A stretch of DNA of 64,000 nucleotides, from positions 372,001-436,000 of the forward strand of contig JBBPEB010000009.1 in assembly GCA_039096225.1 (NCBI GenBank). Direction: 5' to 3'. The DNA comes from Blastocystis sp. Blastoise (lineage: Eukaryota > Protista > Bigyra: Opalinata). Within the stretch, counting starts at the first letter, position 1, and each line of letters opens with the position of its first letter. Position numbers and translations under genes: made by a program. Positions 1,803 through 59,771 of this stretch are shown in pieces. The notes beneath the pieces are model-generated. The model did no database searches, was not told the origin of the DNA, and worked only from the letters and a program-made list of their open reading frames with translations.

Positions 1803-4800
1803 TTAATTAACTGTAAGAGGTTGTACAATTTGACAAGCACCAGTACCTGATTTAATAACCTATATAAAGAAATAGTAAAATTTTGATAGAATAATAATAA
1901 TAATAATATATAGAATATAATAATAATAAACATAATAATAAACATAAAAAATATAATAAACATAATAATAATAATAAACACAATAATAATAATAAATATA
2001 ATAATAATAATAAATATAATAATAAATATAAACATCATAATACATACTTCACCTGTAGCGATTCTAGAAGAGGGTGATACCATAGAATCTTTATATCCAT
2101 AAAGAGAAGAGTTTTGTAAGAAATGTGTGGTAGTTTCATAAGACATTTGAAGAAGAGGTGAATCACAGTATTCGAGACCTTGTCTATTCATAGGACGGAA
2201 GCCTCCATCTTGAGTCATATAATCAGCAATAAGCATTAAATGTCTATAATCGACACTAATACCATAGACGGCAAAGACACTGTTAATTTGATGTACAATA
2301 GCATAACGAGCAGCTTCAACACCATATGTATGTAAAATAGCACCGATATCATTAGATTGAATGTGATTTACATCAACATCTTCACTAAACTGCCAAACAA
2401 CAGGGAAGTTAATACCTTCACATTGAACAACATATCTATCACTAGCGTTAGCATCGGATTTAGGTTTAAGATAGTTACAATTCTTAATACCTTGAACACT
2501 AGTAACTGTTAACTGTTCTGATACTTCTTCAGCTAAATTCAACTATATATATAATTATATTATTTATTAATAATAAATATATAATAAATATAATAATAAA
2601 AATAATAATAAAAATAATAATAAAAATAATAATAAAAATGAATATAATATAATATAAATACCATAAGGATCTTAGGAGCATTAGTAGGGAAGTCTAATTC
2701 AATAACCACTTCATTTGTAGGTATATAATAATAGACGCGACGATAGAACTTTACACGTTGACACATACCAAAGGGTTCAATAAATTCACATCCTTTAGGA
2801 AGATCAGCAATTAATAAGGAATAATCAACCTATATATAGATATAGAATCATAATAATTATAAATAATAATAATAATAATAATAATAATAATAATAATAAT
2901 AATTAAATAATAATATATATACAGCAGTAGAGACAGTTGAGTGTTTAGTTGATTTAGCTTTAGTAAAAGTAGTCACATCTTGTTCTTTAATCTTCATTTG
3001 AAGGTCTTTAGCAGTCTTAATATCAGATATATCAACATCAGGATATTTATTCTTAAAAGTAACTAAATCAGCTTGGAAGCGAGAAGCTAAACGTTGTTTC
3101 TTATTCTCTTTAGCTTCTTCCGTTTCATCATCACTTTCTAATTCATTAATATCATTATTATCACTGTCACTATCACTATTATTATTATTATCTTCTTTCT
3201 TCTCTTCTTCTTCATCAGATTTCTCCATATAATTATCATCATCCTCATAAGCAGCTGTTTCTTTCTTAGAACCAAACTTTAATGTACCTTGTTCATCATT
3301 ATCTTCTTGTTCATCATCGTCATCATCATCATCTTCGGAGTCCGCTACGGGTTTTACTATATCCTTTTGTTGATTCTTTGATAATTTGACTTGATCATTA
3401 AGAGAAGTATCTTTAGCTCCGAAGAGACTATTTAAGTTATATACATTACCACCTCTCTTGGCTTTCTTTAATTCTTTTATAATCTATATAATAATAATAA
3501 TAAAGATAAACATAATAATAATAATAAAGATAATAACAATATTATATATATACAGCTTGACAGAAATTAGGGAGATATCCTTCTTTGATGAATCCCAGGA
3601 GAGTTTCTTTGTTAATACCGTGAACTCTATTAATATCCTCTATATTAGCAAGGTGCATATGAACTTTATATCTACGAACATAACCACTATTAGGTACCAA
3701 AGGATCTTTCTTAACAATTTGTTCATAAACAGTGAAATTCTCATGGGGATCTAATAATTCTTCTAATTGTAAACGATGTAATTCTCTTACTATATTCTCA
3801 GCCTATTTAAATAATATAATAAGATAATAATAATAATATATAATAATATATAATAATATATAATAATAATATATATATATACATGTATTTGTTGTCTATC
3901 TGCCTTTAAAGGTATTTCCATGAGAGGAGTCTTAATGGCCTGAGAAGCAGTCATAATAATTTCACGTAAACGAGGAATACCTATAGTAATATTAATAATA
4001 ATAATAATAATAATAATAATAATAATAATAATAATAATAATAATAATATTAATAATAAAAATAATAAAATAAAAATAAAAATAATAAAATAAAAATAAAA
4101 ATTAATAAAAAAAAAAAAAAAATAATAATAATAATAAAAAAAATAATAAATATAAAAATGAATAATAATAATATACCAAGTGTAACATTAACGGCACCAT
4201 GTCCAGCTAAATGGAATGTATTTAAAGTCATTTGAGTAGAAGGTTCACCAATAGATTGACCTGTAATAACACCTACAGCTTCACCTGGTTCTATTTCACT
4301 TCTCATACTCTTTAACCACATTAATAATTTAAATCCACTAGCTTCAATTTCACCTTTACCCTCCTCTTTCTTCTTCTCTGTTTCTTTATCTAATAATATA
4401 CCTTCAGGATTACGTTTACAATAATTAACTAATTGATCTTCAAATTGTTCACTAACTGCACCTACATTTCTACTTATATTTAATTGAGTATTCACAGGAT
4501 CAGGTACTCTTAAACGAATTATAGGAATACGAACACCATATTCACTATCAAAGATAACCGCGGGAATCTTCTTACATTTTGTTTGATCATCACTATAAAC
4601 AATATCATATTTAATAATATTATTCTTATTTCTAATATTGATAATAACCGCGGGTACGAAGTCTCTACTAATATTACCTAATCTCCATTCTCCATTAGGA
4701 TTCACAAGACGACGTGCTTCTATAACACTACTTTCTTTATATAAATATATATCACCTTTTTCATTACAAGCTTTTTCTTCTTCTAATTCTTTCATAACAA

Positions 4801-7800
4801 CACGACGTTCCTCATGTTTAATTACACTATTTTCCATATCTAAGCCAGTATCTTTAAAGTAATTATCATATACACCAAATTTATACATAAGTGTTTTATA
4901 ATTACGAGCTAAGAAAGATAATTGACTATCTGTACCTTCCATATATTTAGATTTAGAAACATCAATACCATCATCACCATATAAGAATTGAATAACATTT
5001 CCTTCACTATTACGTACTGTATAATCATATTGAACAACTAAATCTTCTAAATGTTTAATAACACAACGTTGTAAATATCCAGAACGACTAGTTTTAACAG
5101 CAGTATCAACTAAACCTTCACGGCCAGCCATACAATGGAAGAAATACTCTTGAGGACGAATACCTGTTAAGAAACGATCACTAACAAATCCACCAGCTCT
5201 AGGTAAGACATCATAAGGAGAAAAAGAAGGTAATGCTTTACCACTTGGCATAATAGGTACACGACGACCTTCTAATTCTTGTTGACCTAAACAACAAGAT
5301 ACTTGGGAATGATTAACTATAGAACCTTTAGCACCTGATTGAACTAAACAACTAAAACAATTCTTTGGGAAATTCAAAATTAAACCATGAGGAAGACATA
5401 CTTGAATAATCTCTATAATTATATTATTTAGTATATTAATAATAATAAAAAATAACTAAAAATAATAAAAATAAAATAATAATAATAAAATAATAATAAT
5501 AAAATAATAATAAACAATAATAAAAAAAATAATAATAAAAATGATAAAAAATAAATAAAATGCATACCTGAAGAAATAGGAGATACAATAGCTTTCATAG
5601 CATTATCAAGATCAATACCAAATTCTTTATTTGTACTAATATACTTCTTTCTAATTTCTAAACGAATTCTAGCTTTCTTTTCTTCAAAAGTCATATCTTT
5701 CATTTCATCTTTTAATTCAAGGAATGTTTCTAAGCCATTTACAGCTCTATTAACACTATCATCAATAATAGCTCTTCTTTGTTTTTCTGATTTTTCATTT
5801 AAAATTAAATCATCCATAGTACAAGTAAAACCATGTTTTTGAAGGAAATAAGTAAATAAACGACCAAAACAACTTAATGTATTACTAGCCATATCAGCAC
5901 CATATATTTCATATATACCATGAATAAGAGAATAAGTAGTAGCACCATATAAACTCTTATCTAAAACACCTCTTAATAATTCATTATCTTCGACAAGTAC
6001 TAATTGTTCTCCTAACTGAGGACCCGTAACATTCTTTCCTTCACCCCACGCTTTATCACCTACTTTAGCTTTACCCGTATAATTAATAGGAGGAAGAGAA
6101 CCAATTAAATGATTTAATATAGAAGTAATGACTTGTTTACCTGTCCATAAAGGTTGAGGCTTATATATACAAGGAGGTACAATCTTAACAAAAGCAGTAG
6201 TACGACCTTTATCTATACCTGCAATAGCTACATATAATAATTGTTGATATTCTTCACGAGTAAGGAAAGTATCACGTTTAGTTAATAAGAAACCAGAAGC
6301 TACATGATCCTATATATAAGTTGGCATAGGATTATTATTAGTAAATAATAAATAATAAATAATAAATAATAATAATAATAATAAATATATAATATATACT
6401 TGAATAAGACCTCTAAGAGGAGATCCATCCTTAGCAGATACATATTGATATTTAGCACAAACAATATTATAAGCTTCAGCTCTGGCCATTTCATTTTGAG
6501 GGAAATGAATATTAATTTCATCACCATCAAAATCAGCATTAAAAGTATTACAATTACTGTAATGCATACGAATAGTTTGACGACTAGAATGTAATATACG
6601 AGTCTTTAAAGCCATAATAGATGCCTTATGAACTATATACAGGAGAGAGACAATAAGTATAATAATAATTAGAATAATAAATAGAGTATATACGTGTAGG
6701 TTGTCTATTCACAAGAACAATATCACCATCCTGAAGATTTCTCCATACTCTCTTGACTCTATAGAATATTAATAATAAATATATTAATAATAAATATAAT
6801 AAATATAATAATAAACATAATAATAATATAATAAATATATACTTATTTTGAGCATTAATACTCTTATTAAGAAGTGTTTTAGCTAAAGCTTTTCTTTGTC
6901 CTCTATTACGTCTTGAGAGATCAATTAAACGACCTCCTTCTTCTTCTACATAACGAGCACCAGGATATTCTTCAATACCATTCTCTACACGTTGACGAAG
7001 CATAGCAATATTATAGGAAGTAACAGGTTCAGGATAAATAAGTTCTTTAGCAAAACGAAGAGGTATACCTACTTCATCAGTATCTATATAGGGATCAGGA
7101 GCAATAACAGAACGAGCAGCGAAATTCACACGTTTACCCATCATATTCATACGGAATAAACCTTCTTTCTTTTCTAATAACTGACGAATACCAGAAGATG
7201 TTTCTCCACCTCTGGTCTTACTACTATCAATATATGCATTAACATTATCTTGCATCTCAATCCAATCATCAATAGCCTTATGAATTGTATATTCATCCTT
7301 ACCTTCTAATTCTATATATATATATATATTATTATTGTTATTAATCTAAATATATATATATATATATATATATATATATATATACGTTGTTTGCCTTCTA
7401 AAGTATCTTTAACACCTAATTGCATCATTTGATAATTCAAACGTAATATTTTAGATAAGTAAACATTTTGAGGATGTTCGAACATTTCTCCATGTAAATG
7501 TTGAGGGGGTCTGAAACGAGAAGGAGTTACAGGTAATACACGAAGGAAAAATACACGATATCCATCAGTTTCATCTTTATCCGTCATAAAACCAACAGAA
7601 GTAACTTGAGGAATATAAATAAGATTAATAATTTCTCTTTCTTTAGTCCATAATTCATGTAATTGGAATTCAACTTCAAGTGGAGGAACATATCTATATA
7701 ATAATAATAATAATAATATATATATATATATATATATATATACTTAGCCCCTGTATCAATATCTTCTTCTTCTTCTATTTCATCTTCATCTTTCCCTACG

Positions 7801-59400: not shown

Positions 59401-59771
59401 TTTTCCTACTAGAGTAATTTATACAATGAAAATATGCTCTACTTCTACAAATTGTATGACAATTTAATAAGAAAATTAGAATTGGTGTGATTATTAATAG
59501 TAATATACTATTCTTATTATAAATAACTCTTGAATTTATAAATTTCTTTATGGTAAGCGATTATTGTCAATAGCTCTAAGAAATAAATTTTGCTTATTAT
59601 TCACGGGAAAATGTAAGATTCCCTTATTTATTTATAATAATCATTTCAGGCTATATTTTCATGTTTGGATTTATGAATTACATAACTCACTGAAAAAATG
59701 ATCTCATTCATCCTTTTTATCAACACTATATTATCCACTTCCTTATTTCTTTGTATAATGAGTAATTATTA

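Follow-up and report, generated by a model that had tools for sequence, protein, structure and literature searches.

The DNA uptake sequences of Neisseria and the Pasteurellaceae are present in thousands of copies and shift both codons and amino acids; they are non-palindromic and driven by transformation uptake, and the USS joins a core to phased AT-rich flanks. The yeast factors Reb1, Abf1, Rap1 and Tbf1 position nucleosomes from abundant specific sites that lie in promoters and nucleosome-free regions and also in subtelomeric repeats. The EBF/COE site (ATTCCCNNGGGAAT) and the RFX X-box are 14-bp imperfect inverted repeats, COE being an animal family, whilst the rotational signal of the nucleosome places S at 0, ±10 and ±20 and W at ±5 and ±15, histones having no 14-bp specificity. 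In cyanobacteria, the iterated palindrome HIP1 (GCGATCGC) is 15–300-fold over-represented and occurs within reading frames, in any frame; its function is unknown and a role in chromosome structure has been proposed (PMC5861425, PMC4390886).

In the tortoise Blastocystis genome (33.3 Mb, 23 % GC) we identified a degenerate 14-mer near-palindrome, ATWMYC-RY-GGKRAT, which is built from graded half-sites (YGRDWAT) and constitutes a double-stranded signal independent of frame and orientation; a fixed exact palindrome of the HIP1 type was not found. An earlier note on the window (the whole 64-kb stretch of this genome analysed) had given the consensus as TTCCC-RY-GGGAA, which proved too narrow, a TAACC/TAATC half being as frequent as the TTCCC half. 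The hybrid TAACCGCGGGAA is the most frequent form, with 236 copies (200 predicted by independent halves, p = 2.6e-4), and the two perfect palindromes have 113 and 58. Because the hybrid outnumbers both, the motif is not a hairpin; the arm covariation expected of a stem-loop or inverted repeat was not seen, hybrids lying above expectation.

The motif matrix was trained by EM on a gene-model-aware background, a plain background having drifted to codon periodicity, and in-sample statistics cover 264 kb, comprising the window and a further 200-kb sample (C4). The RPA1 gene model was checked against the NCBI protein WA158_000534 (identical over 1886 aa), and homology searches of spliced models were run per exon. 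The sites of the window are as follows (scores in bits on the trained matrix; no strand is assigned to the sites).

3737–3750, 4554–4567 and 4644–4657: three sites in exons of RPA1, the RNA polymerase I large subunit (gene 1803–9049, minus strand); 16–21 bits
9222–9235: intergenic site between the divergent starts of RPA1 and a plus-strand gene at 9511; 17.8 bits
10377–12363: one upstream site (10377) and two exonic sites (10672, 12350) of gene 10507–12702; 14–16 bits; 58 and 51 bp to the nearest junction
15256–15869: two exonic sites (15256, 15856) in TRAPPC13 (Pfam PF23647); 11.6 and 21.4 bits
18057–20101: two sites (18057, 20088) in gene 17666–20838; 12 and 17 bits
22957–25235: dense zone in an EFR3-like gene (22957, a perfect 12-mer; 23275, 24103, 24145, 24428, 25222; weak 25034); 16–21 bits; most 37–64 bp from a junction
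27096–28539: three sites (27096, 27343, 28526) in a TBL1-like WD40 gene; 14–20 bits; 28526 mid-way in a 129-bp exon
32161–32593: two intergenic sites (32161, 32580) missed by the earlier note; 14.7 and 12.7 bits
38728–38741: exonic site in gene 36480–38962; 19.3 bits; junction 52 bp away
43266–45404: six sites (43266, 43307, 43547, 43577, 43771 and 45391, the last a perfect CATG-core 12-mer) in gene 42878–47158; 11–18 bits
48790–52004: four sites (48790, 49750, 51837, 51991) in gene 48598–52328; 13–18 bits
59597–60994: two intergenic sites (59597, 60981); 15.5 and 16.2 bits

All 28 positions first listed by the earlier note carry motif-like sequence within 0–3 bp, and 25 of them score at least 10 bits, the other three being weak (25035, 7.7; 46033, 5.0; 52044, 3.5). 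Both of its perfect 12-mers (22958 and 45392) were recovered, and a further 17 matches of at least 10 bits were found in the window. The placement of most copies in coding exons held, with 25 of the 28 in predicted exons and three (9223, 10378 and 59599) in intergenic DNA; of the two copies said to lie between divergent genes, 9223 does so, whilst 59599 is intergenic in a setting that was not borne out as divergent. The absence of copies from the TLDc and transposase coding sequences was also seen by us, no site above 8.2 bits occurring in the TLDc, transposase or PIF1 frames. A homologue search for a single-exon gene was empty. Sites of at least 12 bits number 33 in the 64-kb window and 43 in the 200-kb sample; the window is therefore above average, and the mean density over both is ~1 per 3–4 kb, lower than the one per 2 kb first suggested. 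Only mild clustering was measured, the corresponding property of HIP1 being periodic spacing of 10–90 kb. The motif is not exon-specific as had been thought, intergenic DNA having 0.30 sites per kb and intronic copies occurring in the human subtype ST3.

A codon-shuffled null had been named beforehand as the check that could overturn a genome-wide double-stranded signal laid over the protein code, and the enrichment persists. CCGCGG occurs 17 times in predicted coding DNA vs 0.3–0.4 after synonymous shuffling (~40-fold), in all three frames and on both strands, and the degenerate 12-mer 33 times vs 5.7 (synonymous shuffle) and 1.2 (codon-order shuffle). The excess also survives context-aware codon shuffles, was cross-validated (26 vs 3.6 and 25 vs 7.9) and is seen in three frames and both orientations, in keeping with the different reading frames noticed earlier. 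The previous count of nine exonic CCGCGG in the window is correct; the total is 10 vs 0.18 expected, the tenth (36346) lying within a Helitron-like hairpin. No enrichment of GCGC was found in coding DNA.

In order to describe placement we used 1146 genome-wide sites, around which splice-junction words, 26–30 % of them true splice sites, are 2–3 times commoner at 50–80 bp than at 10–40 bp, on both sides. Near/mid counts over 2292 half-sites were 140/295 for the donor word and 88/259 for the acceptor word, in distance bins picked after viewing in-sample data and then confirmed genome-wide, and ratios at random exon positions were 1.0–1.1 for any exon size. Tortoise sites lie at least ~45 bp inside exons, and the adjoining introns have 10 % GC. 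The flanks carry a damped GC/AT oscillation of ~10.5 bp that extends to about ±25–30 bp and fades by ±35, with GC in phase near ±10 and ±21 and, weakly, near ±31 bp. At equal codon phase, G/C was 28.6 % (+15.5), 39.0 % (+21.5), 31.7 % (+27.5), 33.9 % (+30.5) and 30.5 % (+36.5); the first two contrasts gave z values of 7.5 and 5.2, and the +15.5 trough, 20 % in-sample, was shallower genome-wide at 28.6 %. No phasing was detected at +42.5.

The matrix trained on the tortoise genome also finds the motif in ST3 (52 % GC), with nine clustered sites of at least 15 bits vs 0.7, three of them intronic. Dense ST3 clusters extend over exons and 28–30-nt introns and comprise 9–16 sites, 45–180 bp apart, with no helical periodicity in the inter-site spacing. 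In ST7 the motif is present and weaker than in ST3, and in 25 kb of ST4 it was not seen. Among RPA1 orthologues, one site persists in ST3, and five others have lost it. Subtelomeric ~88-bp repeats contain the motif. A PFO orthologue (85 % identity), on a 7.9-kb contig of 52 % GC, was uninformative.

Exon-centre placement, helically phased flanks and cross-subtype clusters lend new support to the chromatin-organiser reading of the earlier note. We give an even chance to the proposal that selection keeps the 14-mer as the putative recognition site of a dimeric DNA-binding protein, conserved in Blastocystis, that would organise gene-body chromatin. A two-fold symmetric (dimeric) protein would recognise the 14-mer, selection would retain the sites against strong AT pressure, and chromatin would be organised within gene bodies, not at promoters. 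The protein may read the core whilst the DNA, over ~55–60 bp, bends on a single face around either the factor or a histone core; the sites, perhaps working much as those of general regulatory factors do, might then be landmarks or barriers by which nucleosomes are kept at subtelomeres and on short exons flanked by introns that disfavour them. ST3 sites spaced 45–65 bp apart leave no room for a separate nucleosome dyad at each.

More tentatively, the motif could represent a chromatin or replication code unprecedented in eukaryotes, in which a lineage-specific dimer would read ~10^4 exon palindromes, paid for in altered codons and amino acids, and fix nucleosome or origin positions and hence the placement of AT-rich introns, with sites scattered over the intron-rich tortoise genome and clustered in the compact human subtypes. 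If true, the eukaryote most common in the human gut would have its own equivalent of the iterated palindromes of bacteria, and a signal at the DNA level would be seen to act so strongly that codons and protein sequence are remodelled. The 14-mer and its dense clusters in culturable ST3 would offer a handle on chromatin or origin specification in a lineage for which hardly any regulatory elements are known, and the exon–nucleosome link would become testable via a single motif.

It is unlikely, in our view, that the clusters are replication origins, at which a sequence-specific initiator or loader would occupy the GC core, the adjacent AT-rich DNA would unwind, and a loaded double hexamer would account for the symmetric footprint of ~60 bp. 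The ST3 and ST7 loci examined have about one cluster per 20–40 kb, AT-rich introns adjoin the sites, and we count in favour the reported loss of ORC subunits from Blastocystis (PMC7058166). Composition turns from C-rich to G-rich across the ST7 cluster, and around the tortoise sites a weak G excess runs rightward (in-sample); this is the skew direction that has been reported at the MCM sites of yeast (PMC10945306). However, ~10^4 sites in 33 Mb far exceed the need for origins, the skew switch of ST3 locus L028 is accounted for by a low-complexity repeat and L033 has none, and the genome-wide GGG/CCC count (801:583; control 67:51) is confounded by repeats.

We think it rather unlikely that a context-specific mutation, repair or gene-conversion bias makes and preserves the motif without functional selection, as in the methylation-directed repair model of the HIP1 type. 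Sites do originate via point changes in rare codons, with amino acids also shifted; CCACGG, CCGTGG and CCATGG resemble products of C-to-T decay, and ST3 clusters sit in local GC peaks of 60–66 %. Against such a bias, outer CpG cytosines do not share the decay of the central ones, AT flanks are favoured alike in genomes of 23 % and 52 % GC, and junction geometry and phased flanks require a bound particle regardless. A C5 methyltransferase search (PF00145) returned one locus, probably DNMT2, and an MT-A70 search gave no match; the methylation signal offered earlier is likewise not supported.

Ordinary transcription-factor sites (E2F/DP-like or Myb-like) that, the genome being compact, lie within neighbouring genes and work as homotypic enhancers are an improbable explanation. 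E2F/DP genes are present (seven PF02319 matches at ~six loci), the strong half includes TTCCCGC, E2F-like half-sites occur in an ST3 cluster and some sites lie 100–350 bp upstream of gene starts. Nevertheless, sites avoid the first 400 bp of genes (near starts 5 vs 13, p = 0.006), contrary to the promoter location of E2F/DP sites, are denser in exons than in intergenic DNA and are unrelated to gene class. E2F reads CG in its site (obligate and central in TTTSSCGC); T is about as frequent as C at this position, and E2F/DP, E2F having been named by the earlier note for its resemblance to the half-sites, is a poor fit because ~40 % of strong half-sites are TTCCCA, lacking the CG. CSL had also been named; exon-wise searches for its LAG1 DNA-binding domain, run without a positive control, gave no match, nor did a search for the CG-1 domain (CAMTA), likewise without one. 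No RFX winged-helix candidate was found, that family being reported absent outside unikonts (PMC5838959), and literature searches for the motif in Blastocystis returned no paper describing it.

A role at the RNA level, as an exon-definition element, a splicing enhancer or a hairpin, is very improbable and largely refuted already: sites prefer internal, mid-sized exons of intron-rich genes, but the asymmetric word has no strand preference (44:39 relative to the transcript), the halves do not covary, copies are intergenic and subtelomeric, one ST3 cluster occupies an intron-less stretch, and sites are depleted, not enriched, beside junctions. Transposon remnants or target sites are scarcely credible, since, although both the inverted ends of a ~1.2-kb repeat and the terminal repeats of ~25-kb elements contain the motif, orthologue alignments refute them for exonic sites, which fall in gap-free conserved codons (RPA1 PAVI; the FtsH AAA domain) with unrelated flanks, and the window's transposase frame has no site.

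Returning to the known systems, the Blastocystis motif is, like HIP1, strongly over-represented in coding DNA in all frames; unlike HIP1, it is eukaryotic, a degenerate 14-mer with graded half-sites and phased flanks of ±30 bp, placed relative to introns and clustered, with no cognate methylase found by the PF00145 and MT-A70 searches. Like uptake sequences, it has copies in the thousands, alters codons and amino acids and joins a core to phased flanks, but it is near-palindromic, and we know of no transformation-uptake process in Blastocystis. Its spacing equals that of the EBF/COE and RFX sites and its strong form is the EBF palindrome, whereas its most frequent form has a TAACC half. Sites are abundant and also present in subtelomeric repeats, as are those of Reb1, Abf1, Rap1 and Tbf1, yet lie mid-exon, away from gene starts. 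Finally, although phasing is gone by ±35 and ST3 sites are nearer than one nucleosome length, the flank oscillation matches the nucleosome rotational signal in phase and period, with AT-rich DNA 50–100 bp away on both sides.

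Motif-like sequence was found at all 28 positions where the earlier note had marked a recurring palindrome; 25 of these scored at least 10 bits and three were weak, and the mostly exonic placement described was borne out, with 25 in exons and three intergenic. The reported excess of CCGCGG in the window was likewise confirmed (10 copies vs 0.18), and across 264 kb of tortoise DNA (the window plus a 200-kb sample of contig C4, loci L001–L020) this was the top over-represented 6-mer palindrome (19 vs 0.2). Recurrence extended beyond the window to the whole genome, with 1,146 WMCCGCGGKW sites vs 94. 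The window is C3:372001-436000 of this 33.34-Mb assembly, which has 23 % GC and a Blastocystis 18S gene. Exact genome-wide copies numbered 113 for TTCCCGCGGGAA and 58 for TAACCGCGGTTA, the two perfect palindromes (reversed controls 0 and 5), and 236 for TAACCGCGGGAA, a hybrid with one half of each kind (reversed control 2). Extrapolating the matrix excess (~64 sites of at least 12 bits in 264 kb), we estimate that the tortoise genome holds roughly 8,000–10,000 sites.

The consensus, ATWMYC-RY-GGKRAT, comprised two graded half-sites of the form YGRDWAT. The motif is degenerate rather than a fixed palindrome, the hybrid being its commonest form. Hybrids exceeded the expectation for independent halves (236 vs 200, p 2.6e-4). 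This excludes pairing between the arms and is what a protein site would show if one of its halves were strong and the other weak.

Gene models from a self-trained HMM (85 genes, 512 introns) had 29.5 % GC in exons and 10 % in introns, and the model of RPA1, encoding the RNA polymerase I large subunit, exactly matched the 17-exon NCBI protein. Introns in the window and C4 sample were ~90 nt long at 10 % GC, with unusually simple splice signals (donor GTATAT, acceptor TATATAG). Enrichment over a codon-shuffled null, on which the earlier note had staked its proposal, was found across the 131 kb of coding sequence: counts were 17 for CCGCGG vs 0.41 under synonymous shuffling and 0.34 with CG counts fixed, and 33 for the degenerate 12-mer vs 5.7, or 1.2 when codon order was also shuffled. 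As the 12-mer exceeded both shuffles, codon choice and amino-acid context are both affected. CG, CCGG and GCGC showed no enrichment in this coding DNA, CCGG being ~2-fold depleted. Matrices trained on one region and tested on the other gave 26 vs 3.6 and 25 vs 7.9. Roughly one in four CGC and GGG codons fell within sites; in RPA1, the conserved PAVI is spelled with rare codons at one site, and two sites overlap residues differing from all other Blastocystis, which is anecdotal at 61 % identity.

Site density was 0.64/kb in exons, 0.30/kb in intergenic DNA and 0.03/kb in introns. First exons and exons >800 bp were site-poor, and five sites fell in the opening 400 bp of genes, against 13 expected. 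In the sample, 59 % of exonic sites lay 40–120 bp from the nearest junction (30 % expected; never above 43 % with permuted matrices), with p values of 6e-4 (within-exon permutation) and 2e-4 (within-gene) for bins set post hoc. Around 2,292 half-sites genome-wide, the donor word beyond the anchor was counted 140 times at 5–34 nt, 295 at 45–74 nt and 250 at 85–114 nt, and the acceptor word 88 times near vs 259 mid; the effect was symmetric for donor and acceptor, and random exon positions gave mid/near ratios of 1.0–1.1 in every exon size class. A GC/AT oscillation in the flanks kept step with the core, at an amplitude of 5.3 (control sd 1.1), and was confirmed genome-wide: at the same codon phase, G/C was 28.6, 39.0 and 31.7 % at +15.5, +21.5 and +27.5, and 33.9, 30.5 and 30.7 % at +30.5, +36.5 and +42.5; the oscillation was strong in the first two turns and weak in the third, and a fourth was not detected in these data. 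The signal is double-stranded, symmetric, graded and frame-indifferent, with a phased context of ~55–60 bp.

Two genomes that are opposite in base composition both carry this signal. In subtype ST3 (52 % GC), the tortoise-trained matrix found nine sites of at least 15 bits vs 0.7 in 62 kb, although Poisson p values there overstate certainty because sites cluster, more so than in the tortoise genome. Only two ST3 clusters were seen: ~16 matches in 1.3 kb of an FtsH/M41 gene (locus L033:18348-19619) and nine within 0.8 kb of locus L028. Three clustered sites lay in 28–30-nt introns and the remainder in conserved AAA-domain codons, with the flanking GKWAT preference of the tortoise sites. Subtype ST7 had 14 CCGCGG vs 5 and one small cluster, and no motif was found in the 25 kb of ST4 examined. 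The comparison of subtypes rests on ST3, ST7 and ST4, as ST1-like and other loci were uninformative.

The most likely role, to which we give about an even chance, is organising gene-body chromatin: a conserved dimeric protein would bind the motif and selection would keep its sites. That the motif belongs to a eukaryotic code for chromatin or origins of a new class is a tentative proposition, possible but short of probable. No candidate for the dimeric protein emerged from the searches. E2F, suggested previously from half-site resemblance, is a poor fit even though E2F/DP genes are present, because TG/CA cores are tolerated and sites lie mid-gene; genome searches for CSL, RFX, CG-1 and MT-A70 were blank, weak negatives in an intron-rich genome. 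That the motif specifies replication origins appears unlikely, followed by its production through a mutation or repair drive; that sites are ordinary enhancers is improbable, and action at the RNA level, with site orientation relative to the transcript at 44:39, very improbable. Transposon relics are the least credible source of the sites. In match lists, the motif lies in each unit of ~88-bp subtelomeric tandem repeats (tortoise C3:1740554-1740823, C4:1110-2000) and at the ends of multi-copy elements. Elements recorded in the tortoise assembly were:

C3:881.8-909.4 kb and C3:1552.4-1576.8 kb: two ~24–27-kb elements whose inverted terminal repeats contain motif copies in pairs, 130 bp apart; these may be Polinton-like or endogenous DNA-virus elements
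C1:116587-117749, C2:617251-618413 and C3:1389970-1391132: ~1.16-kb multi-copy element, MITE-like, inverted ends starting with a weak motif variant
Window 36343-36392 and ~51680-51735, and L020 ~9300-9345 (C4 ~1,399,300): three near-identical copies of a GC-rich hairpin then CTAG (z -3.7), looking like a Helitron 3' end
Window 61334-61945, minus strand: PIF1-type helicase fragment (PF21530), probably Helitron-derived
Window 55386-56994, minus strand: frame resembling a transposase, weakly matching DUF4218 and free of motif sites

The hairpin at 36343-36392 accounts for the window's tenth CCGCGG. At L020 6200-9200 (C4 ~1,396-1,399 kb), a 461-aa frame amid repeated TGTCGCAACT subterminal words looks like a DNA transposon. 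Further words enriched in the window and L001–L020, namely GCACGTGC (E-box), TGATTGGC (CCAAT), ATGACGC and CTAACGG, resemble ordinary promoter elements.

No description of the motif was found in the searchable literature; the tortoise Blastocystis genome paper mentions neither palindromes nor methylation, and no motif was found there at transcript ends (PMC12129017). As an iterated signal over protein code, the motif is like HIP1 (PMC5861425) and uptake sequences. Unlike HIP1, it has no fixed palindrome, and the genome yielded a single C5 cytosine methyltransferase match (C34:406469-406912). Its geometry is similar to that of nucleosome-positioning factor sites.
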